From Haliotis rufescens (Eukaryota), in the NCBI RefSeq assembly GCF_023055435.1, contig NW_025963935.1, positions 7,626,001 through 7,690,000 of the forward strand: a stretch of 64,000 bases of DNA, read 5' to 3'. Below the pieces are notes generated by a model. That model made no database searches. It saw only the letters and a program-made list of their open reading frames with translations, and had not been told where the DNA came from. The position numbers and the translations under genes were made by a program. Of this stretch, positions 23,101-52,660 are shown piece after piece. Each line of letters begins with the position of its first letter. The first letter of the stretch is position 1.

Positions 23101-26100
23101 CCATCTTGGTTAAACCCGTCAGCAAAGTGACAAGGAAATTATGTTATCAGTGTGCTCCACGTCCAGTTACATAAAGATGCCAGATGCCCTGGTTCCCTAT
23201 GGTGGCTCCAGCTTGTGCATGGCTAAGGATCCAGTGTCGTCACAGAAGCTGCCATTGTCCCCTTAGGCATTGTCCTCCTGGAATATGTTGTGGTCCTTAC
23301 ACTAAAACTAGCCTTGGTACGGGTCACATTTGGGTGGTAGTACACCTATAGGTGTGTTCTTTGGTTCAAATCTGGCGATATCGAGGGTCATACGAGGATA
23401 TTTTCAGTTTAGTTCTGTATAAAGGCTGTTGTTTCACATGCGGTAAGTAGCCTGGCAGTGTCGTGTTGACAGATAGCATAGTTCATAGTGGGGAATATGT
23501 TCGGTTGTTGGATACCGTGGGCCACGAACATATGCCTCGCCACAAGTATGTGTGTAAGATGTGACACGAGTGGACATTTTGCTTTGGACAGTAAAATCGG
23601 AGGGAAGAGAGGCGAGTGAAAGCTCTGAGAAAAGGGAAAAGATTGAAAGAATAATACTTAACCCATTACAAGGATAGATAGATATGATGTTAATAAATCA
23701 TTGGTTTAATCATCACGCAGGTAATTTTTCTGCCACAAATCCTGACGTTGAGATAGCATGTATGTAGAGATTGCGATAAGGCATCCAGGCAAGTAGTAGG
23801 AATCCCCTCCTTGATGATAATTATTTTTGTATGTATACTAGTGAAAACATCTCTCGGATTGGCAAAATCAAAACTTAAAATACTCTGTCGTTGTTGATTT
23901 CTATCGGTTTTTCTGCACGAAATGTATTGCCACACATCCTTTGAATTTTGCAGTAACCGTAACTTTTCATTTTGTAACCTACATGGGTAGATATAATTAT
24001 TTAAATACGCCTACCGACAATGATTAAAAATGTTGTATTCTATGAATATTAGCTTCCGCGGTGATGCGGTCGTCAAATCAGCTGTTTTAATCAGAGGGGG
24101 TTTATTGTGATTTAATAGCCTCTGACTGACCAATCAGAATCGAGTAATTCCCAAATGCATGGTTGGAAACGAAGGCTGTAGTATGGAGGTTGCTTGGCCC
24201 ACCACTTTTCGATTCTGTTGCATGTAGTCTCTCCTGTAACATATGAATTGTTGCTTTGGATACTATAGAGACGTCTAGCAATGACGTCTTATCTCACGGT
24301 GAGCATACATACACAACCCTTACCATTGGGTGCAGTCTATTCTGGAAATTTTGAAAAACGGATTTTCTCAAGACGATTCAAAGGTCAAACCTACTAAAAG
24401 TCTTTTATACATGTGTTGTCTACATGATGCTGTGATCGTGGGCCTGAATGGCGGGCAAATGTAAGTGCTGTGTGGGGTTGTTTTCACTCGACCTGATGAC
24501 CACCCAATAATTAGAACTGTGTTTTATCATTGACGATTCTGCAACACTGTGAAGTAAAGGAATATAGGTGAAGTTCTTTTACTATAAACTTGTGTAATCT
24601 ACAGAAAGGGAACTCTTAATTCTAGTATCCTAGTGGTGAATCAAGGTTGGAATAGTCACTAACAACAATTATGCATGTTTGTCGTAACAGGCGACAGAAT
24701 GGAAAGTCACAATAACGTATGGTAATGATATGATCGGAATCTCACAAAACAGTTATCATGTATCAACGACATTGGTCTTTTACTGAAGCATTTTCGATAT
24801 AGCGCATATATTCAGGAGGTTAATCAGTGGCCTTTGTTCACTATTTTATAAAAAAAAAACTAATTTGTGCAGAAATTAAGTAATTCTACCCGAATTAAGA
24901 AATTAATTGTTCGGGTGACTGTTGAATTAAGCAAAGACATTGTCAACAACTAATACATTATGAAAAAAAAAAATTAATGCAAAATTCTTTCTGATATTTC
25001 TGATATATATTAAAAGCGATAAGATAATGTCCTTAATCTTATATCTTCACTGAAAGAGGAGTTCACAAATATTCTCCAGTAGAACTAGAATATATAGTTT
25101 TTATTGGCCGAGTTTATTTATCTATTTGGCTATTTTGATTGTGCAGCTTACAATAGCAGCATGGTGGTTACAAGTGTGTTCAATCAATATTCCGGCAACA
25201 CGTGCAATACAACTGTTCTGAGCTGAAATATTATCAGGTTTTTGTCAACGAAATACATTTCACATGCTATCGCACACAGTGAAGCGACTGTAAAATGAGT
25301 ATTTCAGAGAATCCAGTATCATTTCCGAATAATATATCGTCTTGCAGGTGAACCCCCTGAGTGTTACAAAACAAGAGTCAACACCTTCTTGACTGCTCTC
25401 CAAAGCTTCTCCGATGCAGTACAGACTGTCAAGGCCGACGCTCCACAAGACTCTCCGGATCGTAGGTCTTTTACAATCACCAACAAGTATTTTCTTTATT
25501 GCAATATCATTATATATCCAGAAACGATAAATTCACTGACCTACTGCTGATGTGGCTTGAACCTTGCTCTACAGACATCTAAGATAAGGTGGCAGATTCA
25601 GCGGGTTTCAATCAGGCCATTAAACGCTACTTGAGAAATGTGTTATTATTCATCTAAACTAAGTCAACAATAACTGATTATTGTTATTACAAAGAGGCAG
25701 TTTTACACAGCGAAGGTTCTAGTGCAGAGAACTTGTGCAGCTATAAGTAAAAGGAGGACACGTGTTTTAAATTTGGATAGTTCATGTTCATGACGTAACA
25801 ACCCTGACATCAGAAAGTACATAGAAATATGTAATCTTTAACTTGTAGTGTTTTGGTCTATCCTTTCTGGACGTTGTGCGTGGTGCGTGAGCTGATTGCC
25901 TTACATGACTAGAAAAGATACCACATACCCGGAATCTGTGTAACATAGTCAAGATGCATGTAGACATATCAGCAAATAAATACCAACTCATGAGATAATG
26001 TGGCTCACCCGGTTATGGTCTTACAGTCGTTACTTAAATCAAGTTTCAAAATGGTATGCCAGCGCAAACAAAACCATGTCTTGTTGACTTTAAGTTGCTG

Positions 26101-27375
26101 CTGTACTTGAAGGTACCGGTGCGGTGTTTGTGGCGTCGTGTGATGGAACTGATGTTGTCGTCGTGGATCCCAATGGCTTCATCCAAAATTGCATCACTAC
26201 AACTGAAAATGTCGATGGATGGACATTGCCTGGCCCCCCCGACGCGATGTCCGACTATGCATCATCTTACTACGAAAACGCTGGTTTTGATTAGAGTCGT
26301 ATGTAAAGCCATGCCATCCGGAATGGATACAACCTTAATAACAGCGCCTGGTACGTTTGTGAGCATTATGTATTTTTGTTCAAAATAACTTATCAATTTG
26401 TATGTTGAGAAAGTACCCCTGTTTGGACATGCAAAGCATCCCTTGTTCAAAATCACTTATGTTGCGAGTGGAGAGTTTGGGATGACAATCATTCAATGTC
26501 CCAGAAAAGGAACCGATGTGATTTTAGAATTGATGACTTTGTGGGAACTTTGTAGATACACATAAACAAAAACATACGAGAATGTATTGTCCTGTGATAC
26601 AGCAGATGCTCACCACGGAGATGACGACTTAGGTAAAGAATTGCGGAGTTATGCCCCTTTTTGTCATGTTTTGACGTCATAGCGTAAAATTTGTTTTCAC
26701 AACATAAAACAAGTACGTTTTCATGACGAATGTGTCACGTTTTACAAAATCGGACAATTGTAATATATCTGTCATGATGTTGTTCGGATATATGACAGTA
26801 TTTTGTTCATTCACAGTTTACATAAAGCTGTCAAATAAACTGTACTTTTTCTATGTACGATCTAATAAGGCTACATATTTTAGAGGCTTTTTCGTTAGCA
26901 AAACAGAAACTTGGACAACATTTAACACTTTTTGCTTTTAAAACCAGTCTTTAATTGTCCATCATGGGGGTAAAAATTCAATAATATACAAGTCCGTTGT
27001 CAGACTTTGGTCCAGCGCGACCGCAATTCTCGGGCAGCGTTGATTTTTCGAAACTATATGCGTCTGAACATTAACTCGGCAACCAGGATTCCAGCAATAA
27101 TTTAATTAATCACAAGCTTTTTGTCAGATATCTCGCGAGACCCGTGTTGTATGCAACTCGCCGCAGTGTGAAAGCCGACTTGTATACAATTTCAGTTCGT
27201 GCAACTAATTGCATACAACAAGTTGTATACAACTACCCCTTTAGGAGATTAAATAACTGTAATATCGTATTACATTATACACTTCTGTTTCTGAAAGTAA
27301 TTGGAAAGACACTGCTTTGATCCTGCCATATTCTTATAACTACCCTATTACACTTTTACATGTGATCTATACAAG

Positions 27376-27607
27376 TAAGTGAGTGAGTGGGTGGGTGAGT
27401 AGGATTTAATGCCACTTTTAACAGTATTCCAGTTATATCACGGTGTGTCAGCTTAATTTGGGAGGAAAGCCCGAAGAGGTGCAGGTCTCAGATGTTTATA
27501 GGTGCGTACCGGATTCGAACCCACAATCATAGGTTTCTAGTGCCCAAGGGACGCAACTCTGCACAGCGAATCGCGGCGACTTAGATGACTGGGCCACCCG
27601 TGCCCCC
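27376..27607 (-). mobile_element. SINE family 2, internally deleted; same insertion as 36910-37195
   Basis: same ctatacaag TSD in both arms. Confidence 0.9.
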
Positions 27608-27875
27608 TTCTATACAAGCAAACGGTCCATTGTTTGATACCTTTATTGAAACTTTTATTCTTTATCAGCCCAAGTCTTAATTTGTCATTGATTTGTTGTC
27701 AGGGACAGCACAAAGCATTACTGGCGTTGCCTTCAATCCTGCCAACGGAGGCTTCCTTTATCTAGCCCTTACCCAGACTTTTCGTCAGAATGGTATCTAT
27801 TCCTTAAACAGAGCAGGCATCGCCACCACACTTGTCTTCTCATATGATGGCGATACTGGCAACATTTATATTTGT

Positions 27876-28240
27876 AATATTCCAGCTGTAAGAAGGCGGT
27901 CTGTAAGTAATCGAGTCTGGACCGGGCAATCCAGTGATTGACATCATGAGCAGCGATCCACGCAATTGAGATACGATGATATGCATCAACCACGTCAGAG
28001 AGTCTGACCGCTAGATCCCGTTAATCGCCATTAACGACAGGCATTGTCGCCACGATCATGATATCACATTGCACAGGTCATTAAAAGAAGACAGATCGGA
28101 GGTTTGTTTGTTTGTTGTTTAACACCGCACTCAGCAATATTCCAGCTTTATGACGGCGGTCTGTAATTAATCGAGTCTGGACCAGACAATCCAGTGATTG
28201 ACATCATGAGCATCGATCCACGCAAATCGGATCGATGACG
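27876..28240 (-). mobile_element. two 5'-truncated V-SINE-like fragments (27876-28050, 28102-28240)
   Basis: reverse complement of gtcgt..ggcgactaacggga...gctggaatattgctgagtgcgg..(caaa)n; mirrored at 36212-36580. Confidence 0.75.
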
Positions 28241-28849
28241 TGAGGAAGAGCTGACAGGTTTTTTTACATTTACATTTATGTTGTGAGAATAGTTTATGGC
28301 TCTGTGTTCTTATTGCGTATTTAATATTTAACACCCTTAAGTAATGCGAGTGGTAGAGAATGGGTCATGTTAACAACTGAACAATATCTGATACAATAGT
28401 GCTGCAGCTACGTGTACATGAGTGACGACCAGAAGATCATCAGAAGACCGCTCGGCAGCACAGGCGACTGGGAGCAAGTCTTGAAGTATTCACTGACTCC
28501 TCTGGAGTTCGTGGTTCTCGAAGATGGTAGGTGCAATACAATTAATCAAATTATAATTCTGGGTTGGCATGTGAATACATTTTTTCCTTTGCGTATGTCC
28601 ACATGGAGACCATTTCGTGTGGACAACATGGGTGCCCGTGTTACAGGGATATGCAATTTTACATAGGTCTGTGAAATTACACGGACATGTAAATAATGCA
28701 TGGTCACAGGAGTCAGAGCGACACGCCCGACAAGGAGGGTGGTGTAACCAGCATATTGCTGCTCAAACTTGACCCTAGTAACCAATACATGGTCACAGGA
28801 GACAGAGCGACACGCGCGACAAGGAGGGTGGTGTAACAACTCAACTAGG

Positions 28850-29045
28850 AATGTCAATATCAGGCGTGATCACCATGTACGATGATAAAGACGAGGCAGT
28901 AGCGGCACATTTGGCCGACTGATCTGGCGTTCACGGCTAGTTCTGGTCCTGTTGTAGGCGTCCACCCATCTCATCCCAGGTATGATCTGTGGGAGAGAGG
29001 TCTGGGGAAACAGCCGGTCATGGCCAGAGATCCTGGGGTGGAGGG
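28850..29045 (-). mobile_element. Tc1/mariner transposase C-terminal remnant
   Basis: minus strand translates to PAVSPDLSPTDHTWDEMGGRL, matching WPAGSPDLLPIEHMWDEMDRRL at 54342-54794. Confidence 0.75.
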
Positions 29046-29461
29046 GTAGGTAGGAACACATATAAAAAATCATATATATATAACTATGATATACTCTGTA
29101 GAGGCATCCATATAGATGCTGTACTCGCTACTGGCAAAAAGAAACAAACATGTTATAAGTGTAACAAGGTTTATTCACAAAACAAAGTCACAACACTTTT
29201 TTTATTCTTTAACGTTCAGATAACGTTGCTTCCGATATCAGCTCATCCTGAAAATATAAGGCAAATTCATTATAGCAAATGAATTACTTGATTCACCAGA
29301 GCACACATATACATACAGGCACAGGCTCACACGAGATCGCAAACACAAAACTCCATACACTGGCATGTGATTGCCTCTCTTCATATATTTAATAATAACA
29401 ATGTTTTGACAAAAGTTGTCATTTGTTTACGAGAGCACCTGCTGTCATTTCTGTTGGGGGG

Positions 29462-29532
29462 TGAAGTGAAATGGGGTTAAACGTCGCGTCCAAGGTTATT
29501 GCACTTTTACAGCGACAGGCATGCACGCGCGC

Positions 29533-29607
<75 letters not shown>

Positions 29608-29820
29608 TGGCTGCTTGTAGTAGTCCTGACTGATGCTGATTTATAGTGATAGCTCACTGAGATACCATACCGCAATGTAACATGAATACCCCACTCAGAC
29701 ACACAGTATACTGACCCTGAGCCGACCAGTCCTTGTCGTAGCCCTTTAATGTCGAGCGCAAGAAAGGGTAACAACAAGTACCATCTTTTAACGTCTTTTG
29801 GCGCTCTACCACTAGACCAC
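29462..29820 (-). mobile_element. Meta-SINE-like element containing a compound (CA)n/(GCAC)n microsatellite (29521-29605)
   Basis: minus strand: tggtctagtggtagagcg A box, core aaagatggtacttgttgttaccc...cattaaagggc..aggactggtcggctcagggtcag...cagtgagctatcactataaa; family name from recall. Confidence 0.7.
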
Positions 29821-30185
29821 AGAAGTATATATTAATATAATTCTCACTTGAAAATAATGTCTTTTTAAAGTATACTTGGTACATATGGTAGGTATCTTTT
29901 AGATTTTGAGCTGTTTGTAGATCAAAAGATTCTAAATAAGATATATTTTTGACAATATCTTGATGATCAAATATCGCCTGAATCTTGCACTACTTAGTGC
30001 AAATGATCACTCACGCACAATTACTATACTATTAATATGCCACTTTCATAAAATCATGAAAAACAGCTTCTCCATCTCCCAGAGTGAACACAACAAAATG
30101 CATTTACTCTGAAGGGAATAACTGCCATGGCTGAAGGGTTTCTACAAGAATCAACAAGCAATAACTTACCGTCATGGAATCCCGT

Positions 30186-33100
30186 TTATGCACAGCTGCA
30201 ACATGACAATATACATCAGAATTACAATTTAACATTTAACGGATGAGGCGGTATCTAAACGTTATCTCCTCTAAACATATCTGACACATCTTGGTGAATA
30301 AAATGAATTATTCTGTTTTGATTGATAACCCTTATTCGAAAATTCTTTAGTGGATATATTAGAAGAATATTAGGATTGAACTATTTTCAGTCACAACTCA
30401 ATCATATCAAATCAAATCTTCAAGCTGTTTTGAAGAGCAATATAAGTAACAAGAAACAGTATAAAGTCTATTGATCTGTGTTCTATTACTGGTTAATTAC
30501 TTGGTCGTTGTTCTTGCTGGATGTGTAACAGTAACTAATACATTGTAAAAATTCATACCACAATGTTGGATCACAAGCAATAGACGGGCATGCAGAGGGA
30601 GTCGACGTGGTGTATGTCAATGAACTAACGAATTCAAGTGATGTAGCATTGTAGATCTCGATATCCCTGAAAGAAGAAACCTCCATTTAGTCACCTTCAT
30701 TGAAGAAACCGGTGAGAGCAGGGCAACACATCGACTGTACAAATGAAACTGGTTTATAAATTAATGGAAAATATGCTACATAACTATGCTTGTCGTAAGA
30801 GGCGACTTGACTTGGTTGATGCATGCCATCTTATCCCAATTGCGTAGATCAATGCTTATGATGTAAATCACTGAATTGTCTGGTCCAGACTTGATAATTT
30901 ACAGACCAACGTCATACAGCTGGAATATGGCTTAGTGCGGCGTGACACAACAAACAAACAAAACCATTCAACAAACAAACTGAATTCATGCACCCTGATA
31001 ACTTAAATAAGTCCGACCAAGAGATGCCTTTTTCGCGGCTTCTCTCTCATGCCTAATCTAAAATCTACTTATACTGACATGATGAGATTCCTTCTGAGTA
31101 TCTACAGAAGCTAAGTAGAGCATGTAGAGGTCTCTCACCCACTTTAACTACAAGTATATCATGTGGTGGTCCCTCACCCACTTTAACTACAAGTATATCA
31201 CGTGGTGGTCCCTCACCCAGTTTAACTACAAGTATATCATGTGGTGGTCCCTCACCTTCTTTAACTACAAGTATATCATGTGGAAGTCCCTCACCTCCTT
31301 TAACTACAAGTATATCATGTGGTGGTCCCTCACCCACTTTAACTACAAGTATATCATGTGGAAGTCCCTCACCTCCTTTAACTACAAGTATATCATGTGG
31401 TGGTCCCTCACCCACTTTAACTACAAGTACATCATGTGGTGGTCCCTTCCCCCTTTAACTACAAGTATATCACGTGGTGGTCCCTCACTGCCTTTAACTA
31501 CAAGTATATCATGTGATGGTCACTAACCCATTTAACTACAGGTATATCACGTGGTGGTCCCTTCCCCTTTAATTACAAGAATATCATGTGGTGGTCCCAT
31601 CCCCCTTTAACTACAAGTATATGATGTTGTGATCCCTTTCCCTTTAACTACAAGTATATCAAGTGGCGGCCCCTCATCCCCTTTAACTACAACTATATCA
31701 TGTAGTGATCCCTTTCCCTTTAACTACCAGTATATCAAGTGGCGGCCCCTCATCCCCTTTAACTACAAGTATATGATGTGGTGGTCCCTCATCCCCTTTA
31801 ACAACAAGTATATCATGTGGTGGTCCCTTCCCCCTTTAACTACAAGTATATCATGTGGTGATCCCTCACCCCCTTTAACTAGAAGTATATCCTGTGGTGA
31901 TCCCTTCCCCTTTATCTACAAGTATATCAAGTGGCGGCCCCTCATCCCCTTTAACTACAAGTTTATCATGTGGTGATCCCTTCCCCTTTACCTACAAGTA
32001 TATCATGTGGTGATCCCTCATCCCCTTGAACTACAAGTATATCAAGTGGCGGCCACTCACCCCCTTTAACTACAAGTATATCATGTGATGGTCCCTTCCC
32101 TTTTAACTACATGTATATCATGTGGTGATCCCTTCCCCTTTAACTACAAGTATATCAAGTGGCGGCCCCTCATCCCCTTTAACTACAAGTATATCATGTG
32201 GCGGCCCCTCATCCCCTTTAACTTCAAGTATATGATGTGGTGGTCTCTCATCCCCTTTAACTACAAGTAGATCATGTGGTGATCCCTTCCCTTTTAACTA
32301 CAAGTATATCATGTGGTGATCCCTTCCCCTTTAACTACAAGTATATCAAGTGGCGGCCCCTCATCCCCATTATCTACAAGTATATTATGTGGTGGTCCCA
32401 TCCCTTCAACTACAAGCATATCAAGTGGCGGCCCCTCGTCCTCTTTAACTACAAGTATATGATGTGGTGGTCCCTCACCTTCTTTAACTACAAGTATATC
32501 ATGTGGTGGTCCCTCACCTTATTTAACTACAAGTATATCATGTGTTGATCCCTCATCCCCTTTAACTACAAGTACATCATTCGGAAGTCCCTCACCTTCT
32601 TTAACTACAAGTATATCATGTGGTGGTCCCTCACCTTCTTTAACTACAAGTATATCATGTGTTGATCCCTCATCCCCCTTAACTACAAGTATATCATGTG
32701 GTGATCCCTTCCCCTTTAACTACAAGTACACCATGTGGTGATCCCATCCCCTTTAACTACAAGAATATGATGTGGTGGTCCCTCATCCCCTTTAACTACA
32801 AGTAGATCATGTGGTGATCCTTTCCCCTTTAACTACAAGTAGATCATGTGGTGATCCCTTCCATTTTAACTACATGTATATCATGTGGTGATCCCTTCCC
32901 CTTTAACTACAAGTATATCAAGTGGCGGCCCCTCATCCCCTTTAACTACAAGTATATGATGTGGTGATCCCTCACCCCCTTTAACTACAAGTATATGATG
33001 TGGTGGTCCCTCACCCCCTTTAACTACAAGTATATCATGTGTTGGCCCCTCACCTCCTTTAACTACAAGTATATCATGTGTTGATCCCTCAGCCCCTTTA

Positions 33101-36100
33101 ACTACAAGTATATCATGTGTTGGCCCCTCACCTCCTTTAACTACAAGTATATCATGTGTTGGCCCCTCAGCCCCTTTAACTACAAGTATATCATGTGGAA
33201 GTCCCTCACCTTCTTTAACTACAAGTATATCATGTGGTGGTCCCTCACCTTCTTTAACTACAAGTATATCATGTGTTGATCCCTCATCCCCTTTAACTAC
33301 AAGTACATCATGTGGAAGTCCCTCACCTTCTTTAACTACAAGTATATCATGTGGTGGTCCCTCACCTTCTTTAACTACAAGTATATCATGTGTTGATCCC
33401 TCATCCCCCTTAACTACAAGTATATCATGTGGTGATCCCTTCCCCTTTAACTACAAGTACACCATGTGGTGATCCCATCCCCTTTAACTACAAGAATATG
33501 ATGTGGTGGTCCCTCATCCCCTTTAACTACAAGTATATCATGTGGTCATCCCTTCCCCTTTTACTACAAGTATATCATGTGGTGATCCCTTCCCCTTTAA
33601 CTACAAGTATATCATGTGTTGACCCCTCATTCCATTTAACTACAGGTATATCACGTGGTGATCCCTTTCCCTTTAACTACAAGTAGATCATGTGTTGGTC
33701 CCTTACACCCTTTCACTACAAGTATATCATGTGGTGGTCCCTCATCCCCTTTAACTACAAGTATATCATGTGGTGGTCCCTTCCCCTTTAACTACAAGTA
33801 TATCATGTCGTGATCCCTTTCCCTTTAACTACAAGTATATCATGTGTTGGCCCCTCATCCCATTTAACTACAGGTATATCACGTGGTGGTCCCTTCCCCT
33901 TTAACAACATGAATATCATGTGGTGATCCCTTCCCCTTTAACTACAAGTATATCACGTGGTGGTCCCTCAAGTATAACATGTCGATGCAAGGCCACATGT
34001 TCAGACTGTAAACACAATTCAGTTCTATTACAATAAACTCACTAAGAACGCACCTTCACTTAGTTTATACTTATTTTATGAAAGACGCAAACTCTCACCT
34101 TACACCTCACTCTTACCTGGCCATCAAGCAACCTGATATGAGAAGGGGTCGGCACAAGGGGCACAGACATAAAATTCCCCACAAGACTGACATTGGTTCA
34201 ACACTTACATATGAATTACCAACAAAAGCAAATCTTATGAATAATAAAGATGCCAATTTTGTATTTGTTCTTGTTTTAAAGAAAGAAAGTTCAGTGTGTA
34301 TATATTCAAAACGTATAACGTCTGTTTTACTCACGCATCGTTTTTGTTTGCGATGTAGATCAGGTCATCATCACAGGGGCTGACTTTAATTGAACCACAG
34401 CAGTCACCATCGGTAGGCTCTTTCAGCTGTCTGTATGTTTTGTCAGTAGGATCATATATCAACACGGCACCGGATGTTTCACAGAACACAATTCTTCCTG
34501 TATAAGAAAGTGAGTGAGTGAAATGGGTTTAACACCGCTTTAAACAGTATTCCAGGCATATCACGACGTGTCGACTTGATGTTAGGAGAAAACCCAAAGT
34601 GATGTAGGTCTTAGACGTTTACCACTTTGGTAAAACCAACGAGCACGGGTATGGTGCTGACAAGCATCATCAATTGAAACATAATCGGGGTGAACCGGGA
34701 TTCGAACCCACGATCATTGGTTTCTGGCATGCCCAAAGGACGCAACTCTGCACAGCAAATAGCGTCACCTTAGACGACTGGGCCATCCGTGCACCCAAGT
34801 GTGAGAAGAGGCATTGTCATGAAATAGTAGAACTCAAGCAGTCAGTATTCCTCGCCGATTTGTATCAGAGAAATGTAGATTAAATGTATGATCTTTTAGG
34901 TAATGATTCACAGCAAAACGCTTTTCTACTTGTATCAGATACATATATAATACCGGAAAAAAAGTATCTATGCCTAATAAAAAGTACATAAAACGTAAAT
35001 AATAAAAAATACATTTATTCTGAATTCGAAACATGCATCTTTCAAATCATATTCATGAAGACATCCCATCAACTTTAATGTCCTGACTTACAAAATGTAC
35101 GTCCATGTTCACGCTGTTAATTTGGATGTTTGCGTGTTTGATGGCAGAATTATACTCATGACTGTGGCTTTACAACCGTTAATATGATTACGCAGTGCTC
35201 AACGTCTACGCACAGTGGGAATGTTGTAAGCAGGAATGGCGCAAAACAGAGATGCCAGACATTTAATGTTTATTAAAACACAACTTCAACTCTTTGGAGA
35301 CGCTATCTACAGCAGGGCAAGGCTCATCACTAGCCACCGTCCAATCGACGTTGTCGGGCGTGTCGCTCTGTCTCCTGTGACCATGAATGGGTTACCAGGG
35401 CCAAGTATGAGCAGTTATATGCTGGTTACACCTACCTCCTTGTCGGACGTGTCGCTCTGCCTCCTGTGACCATGTATGGGTTTCCAGGGTCAAGTTTCAG
35501 CAGCAATATGCTGGTTACACCACCCTCCTTGTCGGGCGTGTCACTCTGTCTCCTGTGACCATGTATGGGTTACTAGGGTCAAGTTTGAGCAGTAATATGC
35601 TGGTTACACCACCCTCCTTGTCGGGCGTGTCACTCTGTCTCCTGTGACCATGTATGGGTTACTAGGGTCAAGTTTGAGCAGTAATATGCTGGTTACACCA
35701 CCCTCCTTGTCGGGCGTGTCGCTCTGACTCCTGTGACCATGCATTATTTACATGTCCGTGTAATTTCACAGACCTATGTAAAATTGCATATCCCTGTAAC
35801 ACGGGCACCCATGTTGTCCACACGAAATGGTCTCCATGTGGACATACGCAAAGGAAAAAATGTATTCACATGCCAACCCAGAATTATAATTTGATTAATT
35901 GTATTGCACCTACCATCTTCGAGAACCACGAACTCCAGAGGAGGCAGTGAATACTTCAAGACTTGCTCCCAGTCGCCTGTGCTGCCGAGCGGTCTTCTGA
36001 TGATCTTCTGGTCGTCACTCATGTACACGTAGCTGCAGCAATATTGTATCAGATATTGTTCAGTCGTTAACCTGGCCCATTCTCTACCAGTCGCATTACA

Positions 36101-39100
36101 TAAGGGTGTTAAAAATTAAATACGCAATAAGAACACAGAGCCATAAACTATTCTCACAACATAAATGTAAATATAAAAAAAACCCGACAACTCCCTATCA
36201 GCTCTTCCTTACGTCATCGATCCCATTTGCGTGGATCGATGCTCATGACTCGATTAATTACAGACCGCCGTTATATAGCTGGAATATTGCTGAGTGCGGT
36301 GTTAAACAACAAACAAACAAACATACAATCTGTCTTCTTTTAATGACCTGTGCAATGTGATATCATGATTCTGGTGACAATGCCTGTCGTTAGTGGCGAC
36401 TAACGGGATCTGGCGGTCAGACTCGCTGACTAGGTTGATGCATATCATCGTATCCTAATTGCGTGGATCGATGCTCATGATGTCAATCACTGGATTGTCT
36501 GGTCCAGACTCCACTATTTTCTGACCGCCTTCATACAGCTGGAATATGAGTGCAGCGTGTACAACAAACAAACAAAACCAAAGCAATCATGCACAACACG
36601 TCCTTGTCAGCCCTTGAAGTAAGTCTGTGTACATACTCGCCACAAATATTAATGTTGCCAGTGTCGCCATCATAGGAGAAGAGAAGTTCGGCGGCGATGA
36701 CTCCTCTCGAGAAGGTATAGATACCATTCGGAGCAAAATTCGTGGTAATGGCTACATAAACGAAGCCTCCGTTGGCAGGATTGAAGGCAATGCCAGTTAT
36801 GCTTAGTACTGTCCCTGACAACAAATCAATGACAAATTAAGGCTTGGGCTGATAAAGAATAAAAGTGTCAATAAAGGTGTCAAACAATGGAACGTTTGCT
36901 TGTATAGGAGGGGGCATGGGTGGCCCAGTCGTCTAAGGCGCCGTGATTCGCTGTGTAGAGCTGCGTCCCTTGGGCACGCCAGAAACCTATGATTGTGGGT
37001 TCGAATCCGGTACGCCCCGATTATGTTTTTAGGTTTGCCAGCACCATTCCGGTGCTCGTGGGTTTCACCGAAGTGGTAAACGTGAGACCTGCATCACTTC
37101 GGGCTTTCCTCCCAAATTAAGCTGACACACCGTGATATAACTGGAATACTGTTAAAAGTGGCGTTAAATCCTACTCACCCACCCACTCACTCACACTTGT
37201 ATAGATCACATGTAAAAGTGTAATAGGGTAGTTATAAGAATATGGCAGGATCAAAGCAGTATCTTTCCAATTACCTGTCAGAAACAGAAGTGTATAATGT
37301 GATACGATATTACAGTTATTTTATCTCCTAAAGGGGTAGTTGTATACAACTTGTTGTATGCAATTAGTTGCACGAACTGAAATTGTATACAAGTCGGCTT
37401 TCACACGGCGGCGAGTTGCATACAACACGGGTCTCGCGAGATATCTGACAAAAAGCTTGTGATTAACTACATTATTGCTGGAATCCTGGTTGCCGAGTTA
37501 ATGTTCAGATGCATATAGTTTCGAAAAATCAACGCTGCGCGAGAATTGCGGTCGCGCGGTACTGGACCAACCTCTGACTTTGCAATTTAACGGACTTGTA
37601 TATTATTGAATTTTTACCCCCTTGATAGACAATTAAAGACTGGTTTGAAAAGCAAAAAGTGTTAAATGTTGTCCAAGTTGTTTTGCTAACGAAAAAGCCT
37701 CTAAAATATGCAGCCTTATTAGATCGTACATAGATAAAGTACAGTTTATTTGACAGCTTTATGTAAACTGTGAATGAACAAAATACTGTCATATATCCGA
37801 ACAACATCATGACAGATATATTAGAATTGTACGATTATTTATAACGTGACACATTCGTCACGAAAACGTACTTGTTTTATGTGGTGAAAACAAATTTTCC
37901 GCTTTGACGTCAAAACACGAGGGCGATGTCTACATGTACAAAGACAAAAAGGGCACAACTCAGCAATTCTTATCCTAAGTCATTGTAACTCAGCACCCGT
38001 CATGATTGTCCTCCCAAACTCTCCACTCACAACATTAGTAATTTGGACAGGGATTCATTGCGTGTCCAAACATGGGTATTTTCTCAACATACAAATTGAT
38101 AAGTTATTTTGAACAAAAATGCATAATGCTAACAAACGTACTATCCTCTCCTCCTAGGGGTGTATCCACTCCGGATGGCATGGCTTTACATACGACTGAA
38201 ACAACACTAGCGTTTGTGTAGTAAGATAATGCATAGTCAGACATCGCGTTGGGGGGGCCAGACAATGTCCATCCTTCTACATTTTCAGTTGTAGTGATGC
38301 CATTTTGGATGAAGCCATTAGGATCCACGACGACAACATCAGTTCCATCACACGACGCCACAAACACCGCACCGGTACCTTCAAGTATATAGCAGCAACT
38401 TAAAGTCAACAAGACATGGTTTTGTTTGCGCTGGCATACCATTTTGAAACTTGATTTAAGTAACGACTGTAAGACCATACCCGAGTCAGCCACATTATCT
38501 CATGAGTTGATATTTATTTGCTGATATGTCTACATGCATTTTGACTATGTTACACAGATTCCGGGTATCCTGGTATCTTTTCTAGTCGTGTAAGGCAATC
38601 AGCTCACGCACAATGCACAACGTCCAGAAAAGATACCCCAAAACACTACATGTTAAAGATTACATATTTCTATATACTTTGTAATGTCATGATTGTTACG
38701 TCATGAACATGAACTTGAATTGCAATGGGCATGTGATGGAAAGTTTAACTATCCAAATTTAAAACACGTGTCACCCTTTTACTTATAGCTGCACAAGTTT
38801 TCTGCACTAGAACTGTCGCTGTGTAACACTGCCTCTTTGTAATAACAGTAATCAGTTATTGTTAACTTGGTTTAGATGAATGACAAATTTCTCAAGTAGC
38901 GTTTTAATGGTCTGATTGAAACCCGCTCAATCTGCCCCCTTATCTTAGATGTCTGTAGAGCAAGGTTCAAGCCACATCAGCAGTAGGTCAGTGAATCTAT
39001 CGTTTCTGGATATATAATGATATTGCAATAAAGAAAATACTTGTTGGTGATTGTAAAAGACCTACGATCCGGACACTCTTGTGGAGCGTCGGCCTTGACA

Positions 39101-39657
39101 GTCTGTACTGCATCGGAGAAGTTTTGGAGAGCAGTCAAGAAGGCGTTGACTCTTGTTTCGTAACACTCAGGGGGTTCACCTGCAAGACGATAGATTATTC
39201 GGAAATGATACTGGATTCTCTAAAATACTCAATCATAACATAATTTACATACGCTTCACTGTGTGCGAAAGCATGTGAAATGTATTTCGTTGATAAACAC
39301 CTGAGAATATTTCAGCTCAGAACAGTTGTATTGCACGTGTTGCCGGAATAGTGATTGAACACACTTGTAACCACCATGCAGCCACTGTAAACTACACAAT
39401 CAAAATAGCCAAATAGATACATAAACTCAGGTCGAGTGAAAACAACCCCACACAGCACTTATATTTGCCCGCCATTCAGGCCCACGATCACAGCATCATG
39501 TGGACAACACATGTATAAAAAACTTTTAGTAGGTTTGACCTTTGAATCTTCTTGAGAAAATCCGTTTTTCAAAATTTCAGTTCCAGAATAGACTGCACCC
39601 AACGTAAAACAACAGTGATGGTTGTTTATGTATGCTCACCGTGAGATAAGACGTCAT
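30186..39657 (-). CDS. gene A: ~333-aa putative secreted beta-propeller-like protein. Coding exons 39657-39640, 39391-39337, 39179-39066, 38378-38142, 36814-36637, 36032-35914, 34497-34335, 30666-30559, 30195-30186
   Basis: all introns GT-AG with matching phases (0,1,1,1,2,1,2,2) and no internal stop: MTSYLTFTVAAWWLQVCSITIPATREPPECYETRVNAFLTALQNFSDAVQTVKADAPQECPDRTGAVFVASCDG...ITGIAFNPANGGFVYVA...YVYMSDDQKIIRR...RIVFCETSGAVLIYDP...IKVSPCDDDLIYIANKNDADIEIYN...CPSIACDPTLCCA*. Exon 2 donor (AC|gtgcaa) is weak, so the N-terminus is tentative. Confidence 0.85.
30787..30980 (+). mobile_element. V-SINE-like fragment
   Basis: tgcttgtcgtaagaggcgact core, gctggaatatgg..agtgcggcg, (caaa)n tail. Confidence 0.8.
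31130..33970 (+). repeat. 37/39-bp minisatellite (ccctcatcccctttaactacaagtatatcatgtggtggt), ~75 units, inside intron 7 of gene A
   Basis: direct periodicity with two length variants. Confidence 0.97.
34509..34796 (-). mobile_element. SINE family 2, full length, in intron 6 of gene A
   Basis: reverse complement of gggtgcacggatggcccagtcgtctaagg...ggttcgaatcccgg...(ctca)n. Confidence 0.92.
35351..35740 (+). repeat. 89-bp tandem repeat, ~4.4 units (only ~1.6 units in the left arm at 28700-28848)
   Basis: ttgtcgg(g/a)cgtgtc recurs at 35351, 35440, 35529, 35618, 35707. Confidence 0.95.
36212..36580 (+). mobile_element. two V-SINE-like fragments (36212-36325, 36380-36580)
   Basis: gtcgttagtggcgactaacgggatc core and (caaa)n tails. 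Confidence 0.78.
36910..37195 (+). mobile_element. SINE family 2 with cttgtatag TSD
   Basis: A and B boxes, tail and TSD visible. Confidence 0.92.
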
Positions 39658-41146
39658 TGCTAGACGTCTCTATAGTATCGAAAGCAACAATTCATATGTT
39701 ACAGGAGAGACTACAAGCAACAGAATCGAAAAGTGGTGGGCCAAGCAACCTCCATACTACAGCCTTCGTATCCAACCATGCATTTGGGAATAACTCGATT
39801 CTGATTGGTCAGTCAGAGGCTATTAAATCACAATAAATCCCCTCTGATTTAAACAGCTGATTTGACGGCCGCACCACCGCGGAAGCTAATATTCATAGAA
39901 TACAACATTTTTAATCATTGTCGGTAGGCGTATTTCAATAATTATATCTACCCATGTAGGTTACAAAATGAAAAGTTACGGTTACTGCAAAATTCAAAGG
40001 ATGTGTGGCAATACATTTCGTGCATGATAGAAATCAACAATGACAGTGTATTTTAAGTTTTGGGGACAACAGAGGGCTTGGAATTTTGCACTTTTCTATA
40101 TACGACTGTAACGTCATATCTTTTGCGTCACAATGAGCGATATGGCGTCATAACGGTGACGTTCGGTGTAGAACGATAGCTTTGCAAAGCATACCAGAAG
40201 ATGAAGTTACCAAGGGGGTTAACTTCATAGCAAAAATTATCATGTTTTGATTTTGCCAATCCGAGAGATGTTTTCACTAGTACACATACAAAAATAATTA
40301 TCATCAAGGAGGGGATTCCTACTACTTGCCTCGATGCCTTATCGCAATCTCTACATACATGCTATCTCAACGTCAGGATTTGTGGCAGAAAAATTACCTG
40401 CATGATGATTAAACCAATGATTTAATAACATCATACCTATCTATCCTTGTAATGGGTTAAGTATTATTCTTTCAATTTTTTCCCTTGACCTTTCTCAGAC
40501 CTTTCACTCGCCTCTCTTCCCTCCGATTTTACTGTCCCAAGCAAAATGTCCACTCGTGTCACATCTTACACACATACTTGTGGCGAGGCAAATGTTCGTG
40601 GCCCACGGTATCCAACAACTGAAGATATTCCCCACTATGAACTATGCTATCTGTCAACACGACACCCCAGGCCACTTACCTCATGTGAAACAACAGCCTT
40701 TATACAGAACTACACTGAAAATATCCTCGTATGACCCTCGATATCGCCCCACCTATAGGTGTACTACAACCCAAATGTGACCCGTGTCACAGACAGGAAC
40801 TGATGCTCACGTTGCATTCTAGTAAAAACGGCGACCCACAGAAGAGATTTGAAAGTAGTGTATTCATCTCGGCACCAAGAAACCAGTTGGAATGTTGGCT
40901 GTAGGCTAAAAGGCGAGTTTGCCTTAAAGACGAACAGATGCTCACGTTACGTGAGAGGAAGAAGGGCAACCGCTACGCTAGAACAGTTGTGGAGGTAGTG
41001 TGTATATCTCTGAACCATTGACACCATTTATAGTCTTTGCTGATGGTTCAAAGGCAATTTGGCCTAAAACAAGTACGTTTTGCATACAGAGTGACAGAAC
41101 GTCTTGTAGAACAGCCGTGATGGTAGTGTATTTCACTTTGGTCTTG

Positions 41147-44100
41147 GGTGGTGCATCAAGGGTGGTGCCCCAGAGGTGGTGCATCAAGGATGGTGCATCA
41201 AGGGTGGTGCTTCAAGGGTGGTGCCTCAAGGGTGGTCAATCAAGGGTGGTGCTTCAAGGGTGGTGCTTCATGGGTGGTGCATCAAGGGTGGTCCATCAAG
41301 GGTGGTGCATCAAGGGTGGTGCATCAAGGGTGGTGCATCAAAGATGGTGCATCAAGGGTGGTGCTTCGATGGTCGCCTCAAGGGTGGTGCTTCAAGGGTG
41401 GTGCTTCAAGGGTGGTGCATCAAGGGTGGTCCATCAAGGGTGGTGCATCAATGATGGTGCATCAAGGGTGGTGCTTCAAAGGTGGTGCTTCAAGGGTGGT
41501 GCTTCATGGGTGGTGCATCAAGGGTGGTCCATCAAGGATGGTGCATCAAGGGTGGTGCATCAAGGGTGGTGCATCAAGGATGGTGCATCAAGGGTGGTGC
41601 TTCAATGGTGGTGCCTCAAGGGTGGTGCTTCAAGGGTGGTCCATCAAGGGTGGTGCCTCAAGGGCGGTGCATCAAGGGTGGTGCATCAAGGGTGGTGCAT
41701 CAAAGGTGGTGCATCAAGGATGGTGCTTAAATGGTCGCCTCAAGGGTGGTGCATGAAGGGTGGTGCCTCAAGGGTGGTGAATCAAGGGTGGTGCTTCAAT
41801 GGTCGCCTCAAGGGTGGTGCATGAAGGGTGGTGCTTTATTTGTGGCGTCTCAAGGGTGGTGCATCAATGGTGGTGCCTCAAAGGTGGTGCATCAATGATG
41901 GTGCATCAAGGGTGGTGCATCAAGGGTGATGCTTTAATTGTGGTGCCTCAAGGGTGGTGCATCAATGGTGGTGTCTCAAAGGTGGTGCGTCAATGGTGGT
42001 GCATCAAAGGTGGTGCATCAAGGGTGGTGCATCAAGGATGGTGCTTCAATGGTGGTGCTTCAATGGTGGTGCCTCAAAGGTGGTGCCTCAAGGGCGGTGT
42101 TTCAAAGGAGGTGGATCCAGGGTCGTGCCTAAAAGGTGGTACATCAAGGGTGGTGCCTGAAAGGTGGTGCATCATTGGTGGTGCATCAAAGTCGGTGCAT
42201 CAAGGTTGGTGCATCAAGGGTGGTGCTTTAATTGCGGTGCCTCAAGGGTGGTGCATCAAGAGTGGTGCATTGAGGATGGTGCTTCAATGGTGGTACATCA
42301 ATGGTGGTGCATTAAGGGTGGTGCATCAAAGGTGGTGCATCAATTGTGGTGCCTTAAAGATGGTGCATCAATGGTGGTGCATCAAGGATGGTGCTTCATT
42401 GGTGCTGCTTCAAAGGTGGCGCCTCAAGGGCGATGCTTCATGGATGGTGCATCAAGGGTGGTGCTTCAATGGTGGTTCTTCAATGGTGGTACATCAATGG
42501 TGGTGCATTAAGGGTGGTGCATCAAAGGTGGTGCATCAATGGTGGTGCCTCAAAGATGGTGCATCAATGGTGGTGCATCAAGGATGGTGCTTCATTTGTG
42601 CTGCTTCAAAGGTGGTGCCTCAAGGGCGGTGCTTCAAGGGTGGTGCATCAAGGGTGGTGCTTCAACGGTGGTGCTTCAATGGTGGTGCCCCAAAGGTGGT
42701 GCCTCAAGGGTGGTGCTTCAATGGTGGTGCTTCAATGGTGGTGCTTTAATGGGGGTACCTCAAAGGCGGTGCCTTAATGGCGGTGCTTCAAGGGTGGTGC
42801 ATCAAGTGTGGTGCTTCAATGGTGGTGCTTCAAAGGTGGTGCTTCAAAGGTGGTGCCTCAAGGGCGGTGCATCAAGGGTGGTGCTTCAAGGATGGTGCAT
42901 CAAGGGTGGTGCTTCAATGGTGGTGCTTCAATGGTGTTGTCTAAAAGGTGGTGACTCAAGGGTGGTGCTTCAATGGTGGTGCATCAAGTTTGGTGCTTCA
43001 AAGGTGGTGCCTCAAGGGCGGTGTTTCAAAGGAGGTTGATCCAGGATCGTGCCTAAAAGGTGGTACATCAAGGGTGGTGCCTGAAAGGTGGTGCATCAAT
43101 GGTGGTGCATCAAAGTCGGTGCATCAAGGTTGGTGCATCAAGGGTGGTGCTTTAATTGCGGTGCCTCAAGGGTGGTGCATCAAGAGTGGTGCATTGAGGA
43201 TGGTGCTTCAATGGTGGTACATCAATGGTGGTGCATTAAGGGTGGTGCATCAAAGGTGGTGCATCAATTGTGGTGCCTTAAAGATGGTGCATCAATGGTG
43301 GTGCATCAAGGATGGTGCTTCATTGGTGCTGCTTCAAAGGTGGCGCCTCAAGGGCGTTGCTTCAAGGGTGGTGCATCAAGGGTGGTGCTTCAATGGTGGT
43401 TCTTCAATGGTGGTGCCTCAAAGGTGGTGCCTCAAGGGTCGTGCTTCCATGGTGGTGCTTCAATGGTGGTGCTTTAATGGGGGTACCTCAAGGGCGGTGC
43501 CTCAAGGGCGGTGCTTCAAGGGTGGTGCATCAAGGGTGGTGCTTCAATGGTGGTGCTTCAATGGTGGTGCTTCAAAGGTGGTGCCTCAAGGGCGGTGCAT
43601 CAAGGGTGGTGCTTCAATGGTAGTGTCTTTAAGGTGGTGCCTCAAGGGCGGTGCATCAAGGGTGGTGCTTCAATGGTTGTGCATCATTGATGGTGCTTCA
43701 ATGGTGGTGCTTCAATGGTGGTGCCTCAAAGGTGGTGCCTCAAGGGCGGTGTTTCAAAGGAGGTGGATCCAGGGTCGTGCCTAAAAGGTGGTACATCAAG
43801 GGTGGTGCATCAAGGATGGTGCTTCAATGGTGGTGCATCAAAGTCGGTGCATCAAAGGTTTTGCATCAAGGGTAGTGCTTTAATTGCGGTGCCTCAAGGG
43901 TGGTGCCTCAAGAGTGGTGCTTTAATTGTAGTGCCTCAAGGGTGGTGCATCAATGGTGGTGCCTCAAAGGTGGTACATCAATGGTGGTGCATCAAAGGTG
44001 GTGCATCAAGGGTGATGCATCAAGGATGGTGCTTCAATGGTGGAGCTTCAATGGTGGTGCCTCAAAGATGGTGCCTCAAGGGCGGTGTTTCAAAGGAGGT

Positions 44101-47100
44101 GGATCCAGGGTCGTGCCTAAAAGGTGGTACATCAAGGGTAGTGCATCAAGGATGGTGCTTCAATGGTGGTACATAAATGGTGGTGCATTAAGGGTGGTGC
44201 ATCAAAGGTGGTGCATTAATGGTGGTGCCTCAAAGATGGTGCTTCATTGGTGGTGCATCAAAGGAGGTGGATCAAGGGTCGTGCCTAAAAGGTAATACAT
44301 CAAGGGTGGTGTATCTATGGTGCTGCTTCAAAGGTGGCGCCTCAAGGGCGGTGCCTCAAGGGCGGTGCTTCAAGGGTGGTGCATCAAGGGTGGTGCTTCA
44401 ATGGTGGTGCTTCAATGGTGGTGCCTCAAAGGTGGTGCCTTAAGTGAGTGAGTGAGTGAGTTGGGTTTAACGCCGCTTTTAACACTATTCCAGTTATATC
44501 GCGGCTGTGGTGCCTTAAGGGTGGTGCTTCCATGGTGGTGCTTCAATGGGGGTACCTCAACGGTGGTGCTTCAGTGGTGGTGCTTCAATGGTGGTGCCTC
44601 AAAGGTGGTGCCTCAAGGGCGGTGCTTCAATGGTGGTGCATGAAGGATGGTGCTTCAATGGTGGTGCCTTAAAGGTGGTGCCTCAAGGGTGGTGCTTCAA
44701 TGGTGGTGCTTCAATGGGGGTACCTCAAGGGCGGTGCCTCAAGGGCGATGCATCAAGGATGTGCTTCAATGGTGGTGCTTCAATGGTGGTTCCTAAAAGG
44801 TGGTGCCTCAAGGGCGGTGCATCAAGGGTGGTGCTTCAAGGGTGGTGCCTCAAGGGCGGCGCTTCAAGGGTGGTGCTTCAATTGTGGTGCTTCAATGGTG
44901 GTGTCGCAAAGGGTGTGCCTCAAGGGCGGTGCAACAAGGATGGTCCTTCAATGGTGGTGCCTTAAAGGTGGTGCTTCAAGAGTGGTGCCTCAAGGGCGGT
45001 GCTTCAAGGGTGGTGCATTAAGGGTGGTGCTTCAATGGTGGTGCTTTAATGGTGGTGCCTCAAGGGCGGTGCATCATGTAGGTGCTCCAAGGTAGGTGCT
45101 TCAATGGTGGTGCATCAAGGATGGTGCTTCAATGGTGGTTCTTCAATGGTGGTACATCAATGGTGGTGCATTAAGGGTGGTGCATCAAAGGTGGTGCATC
45201 AATGGTGGTGCCTCAAAGATGGTGCATCAATGGTGGTGCATCAAGGATGGTGCTACATTGGTGCTGCTTCAAAGGTGGTGCCTCAAGGGCGGTGCTTCAA
45301 GGGTGGTGCATCAAGGGTGGTGCTATAACGGTGGTGCTTCAATGGTGGTGCCCCAAAGGTGGTGCCTCAAGGGTGGTGCTTCAATGGTGGTGCTTTAATG
45401 GGGGTACCTCAAAGGCGGTGCCTTAATGGCGGTGCTTCAAGGGTGGTGCATCAAGTGTGGTGCTTCAATGGTGGTGCTTCAAAGGTGGTGCTTCAAAGGT
45501 GGTGCCTCAAGGGCGGTGCATCAAGGGTGGTGCTTCAAGGATGGTGCATCAAGGGTGGTGCTTCAATGGTGGTGCTTCAATGGTGTTGTCTAAAAGGTGG
45601 TGACTCAAGGGTGGTGCTTCAATGGTTGTGCATCAAGTTTGGTGCTTCGAAGATGGTGCTCCAATGGTGGTGACTCAAAGGTGGTGCCTCAAGGGCGGTG
45701 TTTCAAAGGAGGTTGATCCAGGATCGTGCCTAAAAGGTGGTACATTAAGGGTGGTGCCTGAAAGGTGGTGCATCAATGGTGGTGCATCAAAGTCGGTGCA
45801 TCAAGGTTGGTGCATCAAGGGTGGTGCTTTAATTGCGGTGCCTCAAGGGTGGTGCATCAAGAGTGGTGCATTGAGGATGGTGCTTCAATGGTGGTACATC
45901 AATGGTGGTGCATTAAGGGTGGTGCATCAAAGGTGGTGCATCAATTGTGGTGCCTTAAAGATGGTGCATCAATGGTGGTGCATCAAGGATGGTGCTTCAT
46001 TGGTGCTGCTTCAAAGGTGGCGCCTCAAGGGCGATGCTTCATGGGTGGTGCATCAAGGGTGGTGCTTCAATGGTGGTGCTTCAATGGTGGTGCCTCAAAG
46101 GTGGTGCCTCAAGGGTGGTGCTTCCATGGTGGTGCTTCAATGGTTGTGTCTTAAAGGTGGTGCCTCAAGGGCGGTGCATCAAGGGTGGTGCTTCAATGGT
46201 TGTGCATCATTGATGGTGCTTCAATGGTGGAGCTTCAATGGTGGTGCCTCAAAGGTGGTGCCTCAAGGGCGGTGTTTCAAAGGAGGTGGATCCAGGGTCG
46301 TGCCTAAAAGGTGGTACATCAAGGGTGGTGCATCAAGGATGGTGCTTCAATGGTGGTCCATCAAAGTCGGTGCATCAAAGGTTTTGCATCAAGGGTAGTG
46401 CTTTAATTGCGGTGCCTCAAAGGTGGTGCCTCAAGGGTGGTGCTTTAATTGTAGTGACTCAAGGGTGGTGCATCAATGGTGGTGCTTCAATGGTGGTGCC
46501 TCAAAGGTGGTGCCTTAAGGGTGGTGCTTCCATGGTGGTGCTTAAATGGGGGTACGTCAAGGGCGGTGCTTCAAGGGTGGTGCATCAAGGGTGGTGCTTC
46601 AATGGTGGTTCTTCAATGGTGGTGCCTCAAAGGTGGTGCCTCAAGGGCGGTGCGTCAATGGTGGTGCATGAAGGATGGTGCTTCAATGGTGGTGCCTTAA
46701 AGGTGGTGCCTCAAGGGTGGTGCTTCAATGGTGGTGCTTCAATGGGGGTACCTCAAGGGCGGTGCCTCAAGGGCGGTGCATCAAGGATGTGCTTCAATGG
46801 TGGTGCTTCAATGGTGGTTCCTCAAAGGTGGTGCCTCAAGGGCGGTGCATCAAGGGTGGTGCTTCAAGGGTGGTGCTTAAATGGGGGTACGTCAAGGGCG
46901 GTGCTTCAAGGGTGGTGCATCAAGGGTGGTGCTTCAATGGTGGTTCTTCAATGGTGGTGCCTCAAAGGTCGTGCCTCAAGGGCGGTGCGTCAATGGTGGT
47001 GCATGAAGGATGGTGCTTCAATGGTGGTGCCTTAAAGGTGGTGCCTCAAGGGTGGTGCTTCAATGGTGGTGCTTCAATGGGGGTACCTCAAGGGCCGTGC

Positions 47101-52641: not shown

Positions 52642-52660
52642 TGTGATTCTTCAAACAGCT

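Follow-up and report, generated by a model that had tools for sequence, protein, structure and literature searches.

Abalone are a textbook system for the rapid evolution of recognition proteins, although only a handful of cases (lysin, sp18, VERL and the VEZPs) have been described. In the snake-venom PLA2 and conotoxin families, introns are highly similar while the mature-peptide exons evolve faster, with a ratio of nonsynonymous to synonymous divergence (dN/dS, or omega) above 1. For the abalone sperm proteins lysin and sp18, nonsynonymous substitution is reported to lie above intron substitution (Metz, Robles-Sikisaka & Vacquier 1998, PMC27954, as cited in PMC9022041), and the abalone acrosomal family is described as combining tandem duplication with positive selection (PMC9022041). 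In the HNWD, het-e and het-d WD-repeat genes of Podospora, diversifying selection acts on a few hypervariable propeller positions, and concerted evolution homogenises the remainder (PMC2873952, PMC12222747). Here we analyse a window of 64,000 nucleotides from Haliotis rufescens (RefSeq assembly GCF_023055435.1, contig NW_025963935.1, positions 7,626,001 to 7,690,000 of the forward strand), to which all coordinates below refer unless the contig is named, and a minus-strand gene within it, gene A, which is RefSeq LOC124117298 and encodes an "uncharacterized protein" of 379 residues (P0027).

Gene A belongs to a tandem set of four paralogs that are intact and expressed, and that are accompanied by one dead inverted fragment. 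We consider it probable that a bounded segment of the secreted propeller encoded by these genes is under diversifying selection, acting together with gene conversion; the copy paired with gene A in the window is a pseudogene. An earlier note, made from the letters of the window, had read the divergence between gene A and this inverted partner as the mark of diversifying selection on a secreted protein; the excess of exon over intron divergence and the dN/dS above 1 in two exons hold, but gene conversion accounts for part of the contrast and the partner is not a functional gene.

The locus resembles lysin and sp18 in lying in the same genus, in encoding secreted proteins from tandem duplicates, in a replacement divergence that outruns that of introns and in a dN/dS above 1. 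Lysin and sp18 are, however, helical bundles of ~16-18 kDa that are unrelated to the gene A family, whose 379-residue protein is predicted to pair a helical hairpin with a six-bladed propeller, and the gene A signal differs from theirs in being limited to ~80 residues, in being measured among the paralogs of one genome and in the contribution of gene conversion. Like the Podospora HNWD proteins, gene A would have a propeller that is hypervariable in part and homogenised in the remainder, although those proteins are intracellular, fungal and NLR-like, with exchange between repeats within and between genes, whereas in abalone it is entire tandem genes, coding for a secreted animal protein, that exchange sequence. 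Unlike in the PLA2 and conotoxin families, nothing points to a toxin, and the variable part corresponds to two blades of a large propeller rather than to the whole mature peptide. The locus adds an unannotated, Haliotis-only gene family whose fold is defined and whose hypervariable segment has sharp limits, and it carries a built-in neutral control, in the form of introns ~95% identical and a dead copy, for diversifying selection and gene conversion on the same genes. If the family does form a recognition repertoire, the model genus of lysin and VERL would hold a second rapidly evolving recognition system, structurally unrelated to the first.

Exon and intron divergence among the copies

The inverted duplication described in the earlier note was recovered by both blastn and MAFFT, with arms at ~23319-28837 (plus strand) and 35603-40785 (minus strand) that are 88-96% identical per block. 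The right arm carries exons 2 to 5 of gene A on the minus strand (E2, 39179-39066; E3, 38378-38142; E4, 36814-36637; E5, 36032-35914), which the note had numbered 3 to 6. The left arm (23319-28837) is a partial inverted copy, LC, in which only the same four exons are present on the plus strand (E2, 25348-25461; E3, 26113-26350; E4, 27703-27876; E5, 28408-28526).

Between gene A and LC, 192 of 3996 non-coding positions differ (4.8%), and neither E2 (5/114, 4.4%) nor E5 (1/119, 0.8%) is raised above this level. Divergence reaches 11.8% in E3 (28/237, Fisher p=2.7e-5) and 15.6% in E4 (27/173, Fisher p=1.9e-7), so that the two exons do diverge beyond the introns as had been claimed; the hand counts given for E4 (27 of ~173 nt) and for the 92 nt of intron just upstream of it (4 differing positions) were both reproduced. 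By the Nei-Gojobori method, replacement and silent differences stand at 5:0 in E2, 22.5:4.5 in E3, 23.2:3.8 in E4 and 1:0 in E5, a total of 51.8:8.2 that agrees with the earlier hand count of ~45:8 and corresponds to an omega of 1.99, the bootstrap probability that the proportion of replacement sites differing (pN) does not exceed that of silent sites (pS) being 0.024. The motifs that the note had quoted occur in both copies, but one of them, TPLGGEDR, spans a splice junction. Many of the changes are clustered and multi-base; of the codon swaps that the note had listed, the 13-nt one at the end of E3 is one replacement event derived in gene A.

LC is an unprocessed pseudogene fragment. We call it so because it has no E1 and no E6-E8; genome searches with E1 and E6 each gave four copies on the window's contig, none of them belonging to LC. 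A one-base insertion in its E3 (26285-26294, placed at 26290 by alignment) brings a TAG stop (26292-26294) into frame, and a 93-nt deletion with its junction at 27873-27880, corresponding to gene A 36548-36640, has removed the last 4 nt of E4 together with the GT donor. In addition, the family-invariant Cys106 is replaced by Ser. With its reading frame, a splice donor, an invariant cysteine and several exons disrupted or missing, the partner is not the second gene for which it had been taken.

Three further paralogs, P1, P2 and P3, lie 50-130 kb away on the same contig with E1-E7 intact, and P2 is LOC124117311, another "uncharacterized protein" (P0029), while P3 has an apparent counterpart in H. 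cracherodii (P0028). The cluster spans ~187 kb (contig positions 7492082-7678641) in the order P3 (+), P1 (-), P2 (-), LC (+) and gene A (-). Non-coding divergence from gene A is 4.7% for P1, 4.3% for P2 and 8.0% for P3, and the introns of the three paralogs are 92-96% identical to those of gene A, whereas E4 is just 73-79% identical and only 51-58% identical as protein; E1, by comparison, is 88-99% identical as protein. A 150-nt window placed on E4 gives 73-84% identity in nine of the ten pairs among the five copies against 91-98% in the adjoining windows. The only exception is the very young P1-P2 pair, and even these two copies, which differ by 1.3% in non-coding DNA, show 8.5 replacement to 1.5 silent differences in E4. 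In the non-recent pairs, E4 diverges by 15.6-25.8% and non-coding DNA by 4.3-8.0% (Fisher p 1.9e-7 to 2e-13), and the proportion of variable sites is 39% in E4 and 11.7% in non-coding DNA.

The excess is sharply bounded within the gene. In the five-way alignment the 5' half of E3 (residues 110-187) is almost invariant across the family while its 3' half (~38248-38142) is hypervariable; E4 (residues 188-247) is the exon that is hypervariable throughout the family, and E5 is not hypervariable. E6 and E7 show no dip in identity among the paralogs. Among six full-length proteins from two species, 39-53% of residues 161-240 differ against 8-13% elsewhere, a 3.5- to 6.4-fold excess, and a young protein pair from H. 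cracherodii has 12 differences within residues 161-240 and 7 in the rest of the chain.

Tests for selection, gene conversion and alternative explanations

Codon tests were run with a Goldman-Yang-type likelihood that we wrote in Python, exon by exon with split codons dropped, on the four intact paralogs of this one genome (five sequences with LC). On the parsimony tree ((gene A, LC),(P1,P2),P3), the non-coding length is 0.131 per site, and the silent and replacement lengths are 0.293 and 0.555 for E4, 0.180 and 0.253 for E3, 0.082 and 0.092 for E2, and 0.079 and 0.109 for E5, the replacement length of E4 being 1.9 times its local silent length. Pairwise omega for E4 is 1.4-4.3 in all ten pairs (Nei-Gojobori), with a pN of 0.18-0.29 against a non-coding divergence of 0.043-0.080. 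For the four intact genes, site model M2a is favoured over M1a (twice the log-likelihood difference, 2dlnL, = 41.0, p=1.2e-9) with 12% of codons at an omega of 8.9; adding LC raises 2dlnL to 55.1, and the sites with a posterior above 0.9 all fall within residues 163-232. Because these site models share branch lengths across parts of the gene that have different histories, a single omega was also fitted with local branch lengths, which gave 2.09 for E3 and E4 together (likelihood-ratio statistic 8.49, p=0.0036) and 2.20 with LC (p=0.0005). Residues 161-240, a window picked after seeing the data, give an omega of 2.30 (p=0.0026), and the rest of the gene outside E3 and E4 gives 0.80, which is not significant, with E1 at 0.35. 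In E3 and E4, dN/dS thus exceeds 1 among the four intact paralogs as well as between gene A and LC; the comparison of M1a with M2a had been suggested in the earlier note.

Interlocus gene conversion homogenises the introns of the five copies. The 72 informative sites, at which the copies split two against two, fall into 22 runs, and none of 100,000 shuffles was as clustered (p<1e-5). Between 40283 and 39250, fourteen sites in a row place gene A with P1 and P2, and LC with P3; the sites at 39213-37234 mostly group gene A with LC, the topology changes again at 36512-36272, and gene A joins LC once more at 36012-35650. Identical tracts of 261 nt (gene A and LC) and 244 nt (gene A and P2) stand against a mean divergence of ~4.5%. 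Part of the contrast between exons and introns therefore arises because gene conversion keeps the introns alike.

These observations suggest a history in which gene conversion between the loci would repeatedly homogenise the introns and scaffold exons, holding them at ~95% identity, while diversifying selection on ~80 residues (161-240, encoded by the 3' half of E3 and by E4) would drive replacement and oppose homogenisation. The segment would thereby have diverged 2-5 times faster than neutral DNA, and LC would record the same history before it died through its frameshift, stop codon, lost donor and lost cysteine. Conversion may stop short of the variable segment, or be selected against there, and a silent excess in E4 and raised introns beside the variable exons would fit either possibility.

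Several results weigh against diversifying selection. At silent sites, E4 has diverged ~2.2 times as far as non-coding DNA, and between gene A and LC the intron stretches of 100-150 nt directly downstream of E3 and of E4 reach ~10% divergence, compared with 3-6% upstream; part of the excess is therefore due to older ancestry or to a tract effect. In E3, moreover, the gene-A-specific excess runs ~140 nt into the intron. E4 taken alone has an omega of 1.77 that is not significant in the four intact genes (p=0.09) and reaches 1.89 with LC (p=0.044), and the whole-gene M0 omega of 1.29 is not significantly above 1, so that the claim rests on the regional and site tests only. Those tests are carried by four or five sequences and by our own code rather than by PAML or HyPhy, recombination and multi-nucleotide changes inflate site-model tests in general and recombination is demonstrably present at this locus, and the branch of the LC pseudogene shows a replacement excess as well.

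The alternative that draws most on these results does without positive selection: the segment would simply be unconstrained (omega ~1), conversion would reset the introns and the scaffold while its tracts fail or are rare across the mismatched segment, and multi-nucleotide events and a small sample would lift omega. The proven mosaic ancestry, the silent excess of E4, the downstream intron shoulders and the p value of E4 alone all accord with this explanation, as do the scaffold exons, whose omega of ~0.8-1.4 indicates a weakly constrained gene as a whole, and the many differences that are clustered multi-base changes. It is harder to reconcile with an E4 omega above 1 in every one of the ten pairs, with the omega of 2.1-2.2 obtained for E3 and E4 with local branch lengths, or with replacement at 1.9 times the local silent rate. 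The motifs AFNPANGG and DTGNI are invariant within the same exon, which is therefore not free of constraint, and four copies have retained their open reading frames and are transcribed. On balance we regard an explanation without positive selection as unlikely, though it is the most serious competitor to diversifying selection combined with conversion.

It is also conceivable that the variable patches were imported, in the manner of cassettes, by conversion or exon shuffling from distant family members or unsampled alleles, so that the divergence would be old and borrowed. The genome holds ~30 related loci, and gene A does carry tracts of its own: between 38248 and 38005, crossing from E3 into the intron, there are 21 gene-A-only changes in ~245 nt, at densities of 6, 3 and 4 per 50 nt where the background is 1-2, and a further gene-A-specific divergent tract lies in intron 2 at 38887-38698. 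The 13-nt block at the end of E3 is derived in gene A, with LC, P1 and P3 sharing one common form, and since it sits inside a tract that reaches into the intron, it is not purely a coding-site effect; it looks like a tract event rather than the outcome of site-by-site selection. Whole-genome searches with E3 and E4, however, found no donor in the assembly closer to the variable patches of gene A than LC or P1-P3, the next E4 matches lying at 66% and 58% protein identity and then at 51% or below. A third paralog matching the patches, which the earlier note had named as a finding that would count against selection, is thus absent from the assembly. Distant donors would, in addition, have saturated the silent sites, but E4 silent divergence is just 0.07-0.19, which argues against import from distant members and leaves this origin very improbable.

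A technical origin, in a misassembled or haplotypic inverted duplicate or in misaligned exons, is scarcely credible: although independent reads were examined at gene A and not at the left copy, the contrast recurs in three other paralogs, which lie 50-130 kb away, and at the protein level in H. cracherodii, the exon alignments are gap-free but for one base, and LC, truncated and with large indels relative to gene A, is unlike a haplotig.

Gene model, predicted fold and family

The gene model of gene A is based on joints in RNA contigs, on direct reading of splice sites and on tblastn with the H. cracherodii homologue P0003, and the exon translations are found letter for letter inside P0027, the sequence on which the full-length analyses were based. 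E1 (52641-52431, minus strand, as are all exons of gene A) holds the start codon, the signal peptide and a first helix with a CPC motif; its ATG and its GTAAGT donor were read in the sequence, its translation is contained in P0027, and residues 1-72 of P0003 match it at 90% identity. This is the exon that had been described as a separate "gene B", a third and distant member of the family at 52200-52700. Intron 1 spans 13 kb and is followed by E2, which encodes a second helix and terminates in the invariant cysteine of a CPDR motif. The two exons that the earlier note had placed upstream of E2, at 39462-39657, are not exons, as RNA depth there is zero and they are absent from the RefSeq protein. 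E6 (34497-34335), located by tblastn and splice-site reading in the spacer between the arms, is 92-98% identical to its paralogs, and E7 (30666-30559) was placed in the same way; the terminal three codons belong to one more small exon, which was not located.

Transcripts of gene A and of P1/P2 are present and spliced in two RNA-type runs of Haliotis rufescens. The joints 36637|36032 (E4 to E5) and 38378|39066 (E2 to E3) have GT..AG ends, and some of the contigs that cross them, from public runs guessed to be RNA, have no mismatches to the window; E2-E5 are each confirmed by spliced RNA contigs with zero mismatches, E3 with no differences and E5 also by its splice sites. Mapping was to gene A alone, with a likeness threshold of 90%, so that reads from paralogs can cross-map, and paralog-specific letters are indeed seen in the same runs as gene A. 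What first appeared to be a second expressed form of E5, and was considered as a divergent allele or as proof of conversion between the arms, consists of letters from P1/P2 reads that cross-map at this threshold. None of the variant letters listed in the RNA contigs is specific to LC, a statement limited by the mapping of reads to gene A and by 146 further differences outside that list.

The AlphaFold2 model, built on a 19-sequence alignment (mean predicted local distance difference test, pLDDT, 75; predicted template modelling score, pTM, 0.68), has a signal peptide, helices at residues 37-66 and 77-101 and ~24-25 strands over residues 113-372. The modelled protein accordingly places a cysteine-bearing helical hairpin N-terminal to a propeller, and the chain stops 7 residues after the final strand. 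VIA-align superposes the model on nidogen (1npe) with Z 25.4 and a root-mean-square deviation of 2.7 over 246 residues, and the YWTD propellers of nidogen, ApoER2, LRP4 and LDLR are the top structural matches (Z 24-25, root-mean-square deviation 2.7-3.2 over ~250 residues; Z 22-25 over 241-254 residues for the YWTD class with LRP6 included). The top Foldseek matches are six-bladed propellers too, and TolB, Kelch, NHL and SGL propellers reach almost the same scores, all of these matches being at 10-16% identity. The model thus predicts a YWTD-like six-bladed beta-propeller whose likeness to known proteins is limited to the fold, in keeping with the secreted, propeller-bodied protein that the earlier note had foreseen. 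A family profile searched against PDB sequences found nothing significant, the nearest being an archaeal S-layer protein at E=0.005 and WD proteins at E>0.2, and Pfam assigned no family to any of ten member proteins (E<=0.1) or of six exon-spanning open reading frames (E<=1).

YWTD (LDL-receptor class B) propellers, as in nidogen, LDLR, ApoER2, LRP4 and LRP6, are extracellular and ligand-binding, and they provide the best structural matches. Unlike these proteins, the gene A family matches no Ldl_recept_b domain (PF00058), has no EGF module and carries the N-terminal helical hairpin. Olfactomedin-type proteins, which combine a signal peptide, a coiled coil and a propeller, differ in that the gene A family has no match to OLF (PF02191) and in that the OLF propeller is five-bladed, whereas the best matches here are six-bladed.

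A profile of the E3 translations searched against 1.84 billion representative proteins gave 24 matches. All those looked up with E<1e-6, along with four weaker ones, are unnamed Haliotis proteins of ~360-410 residues (from rufescens, cracherodii, rubra and asinina), and two of the other weak matches, when looked up, proved to be repeat proteins from bacteria or metagenomes. On these sequence matches, the family appears only in Haliotis among the proteins searched. Within the Haliotis rufescens genome, all 109 matches to the profile are the size of single exons and conform to the same exon structure, ~28 of them being exon 1 matches, which lie on contigs C157 (that of the window), C446, C22, C57, C1, C445, C90 and C13; altogether the genome has ~30 related multi-exon loci. 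We found no description of the gene A family in the literature, and the LOC identifiers of six members appear in no paper that we found.

In the model, the hypervariable residues 163-170, 182-192 and 202-238 extend over some seven strands in a row, loops included, or roughly two adjacent blades. We infer that the variable segment would form a ligand-binding surface and that each paralog would have its own specificity. As to the partner, microbial or glycan recognition is our leading, though tentative, guess; a partner of some other kind seems doubtful, and gamete recognition somewhat more doubtful still. It may also be, although we would not yet favour it, that the ~30 loci of this Haliotis-only family of helical stalk and six-bladed propeller constitute a diversified recognition repertoire, in which two blades are kept different while conversion homogenises the rest and the partner is microbial, glycan or gametic. 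Residues 163-232 and the four intact genes offer concrete targets for work on binding, expression and polymorphism.

Repeats and other features of the window

Most of intron 1 of gene A is a 14-bp satellite (41146-49782) of ~617 copies with the consensus GGGTGGTGCTTCAA and a GC skew of ~+0.37, and a homologous array occupies the corresponding place in paralog P1. Nearer to E2, gene A lacks a segment of ~600 nt at 39428 that is carried by the left copy (24497-25109), P1 and P2, and that measures ~1.6 kb in P3; its absence may reflect a deletion specific to gene A, or an old insertion that was lost only in gene A. Intron 6 contains a 39-bp satellite (31113-33970, ~75 copies) that is also found in P1-P3 and that reads as a long minus-strand open frame of GEGPPHDILVVKG-type repeats, yet is intronic.

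An 89-bp tandem repeat of 4.4 copies (35351-35741) occurs precisely where the right arm has its inner boundary, and the left arm (28696-28837) stops within one copy of it, so that the repeat may mark the breakpoint of the inverted duplication. The window also contains two runs of N, at 2711-2925 (215 bases) and 12899-13099 (201 bases). Finally, two intronic stretches at 36159-36557 and 36824-37222, with counterparts in the left arm at 27498-27600 and 27877-28240, reach contig depths of 1e5-1e7 in every run, those of other species included, and show many joints that run backwards; a related copy lies at 30808-30966. These stretches are interspersed repeats, possibly resembling short interspersed nuclear elements (SINEs) or miniature inverted-repeat transposable elements (MITEs).

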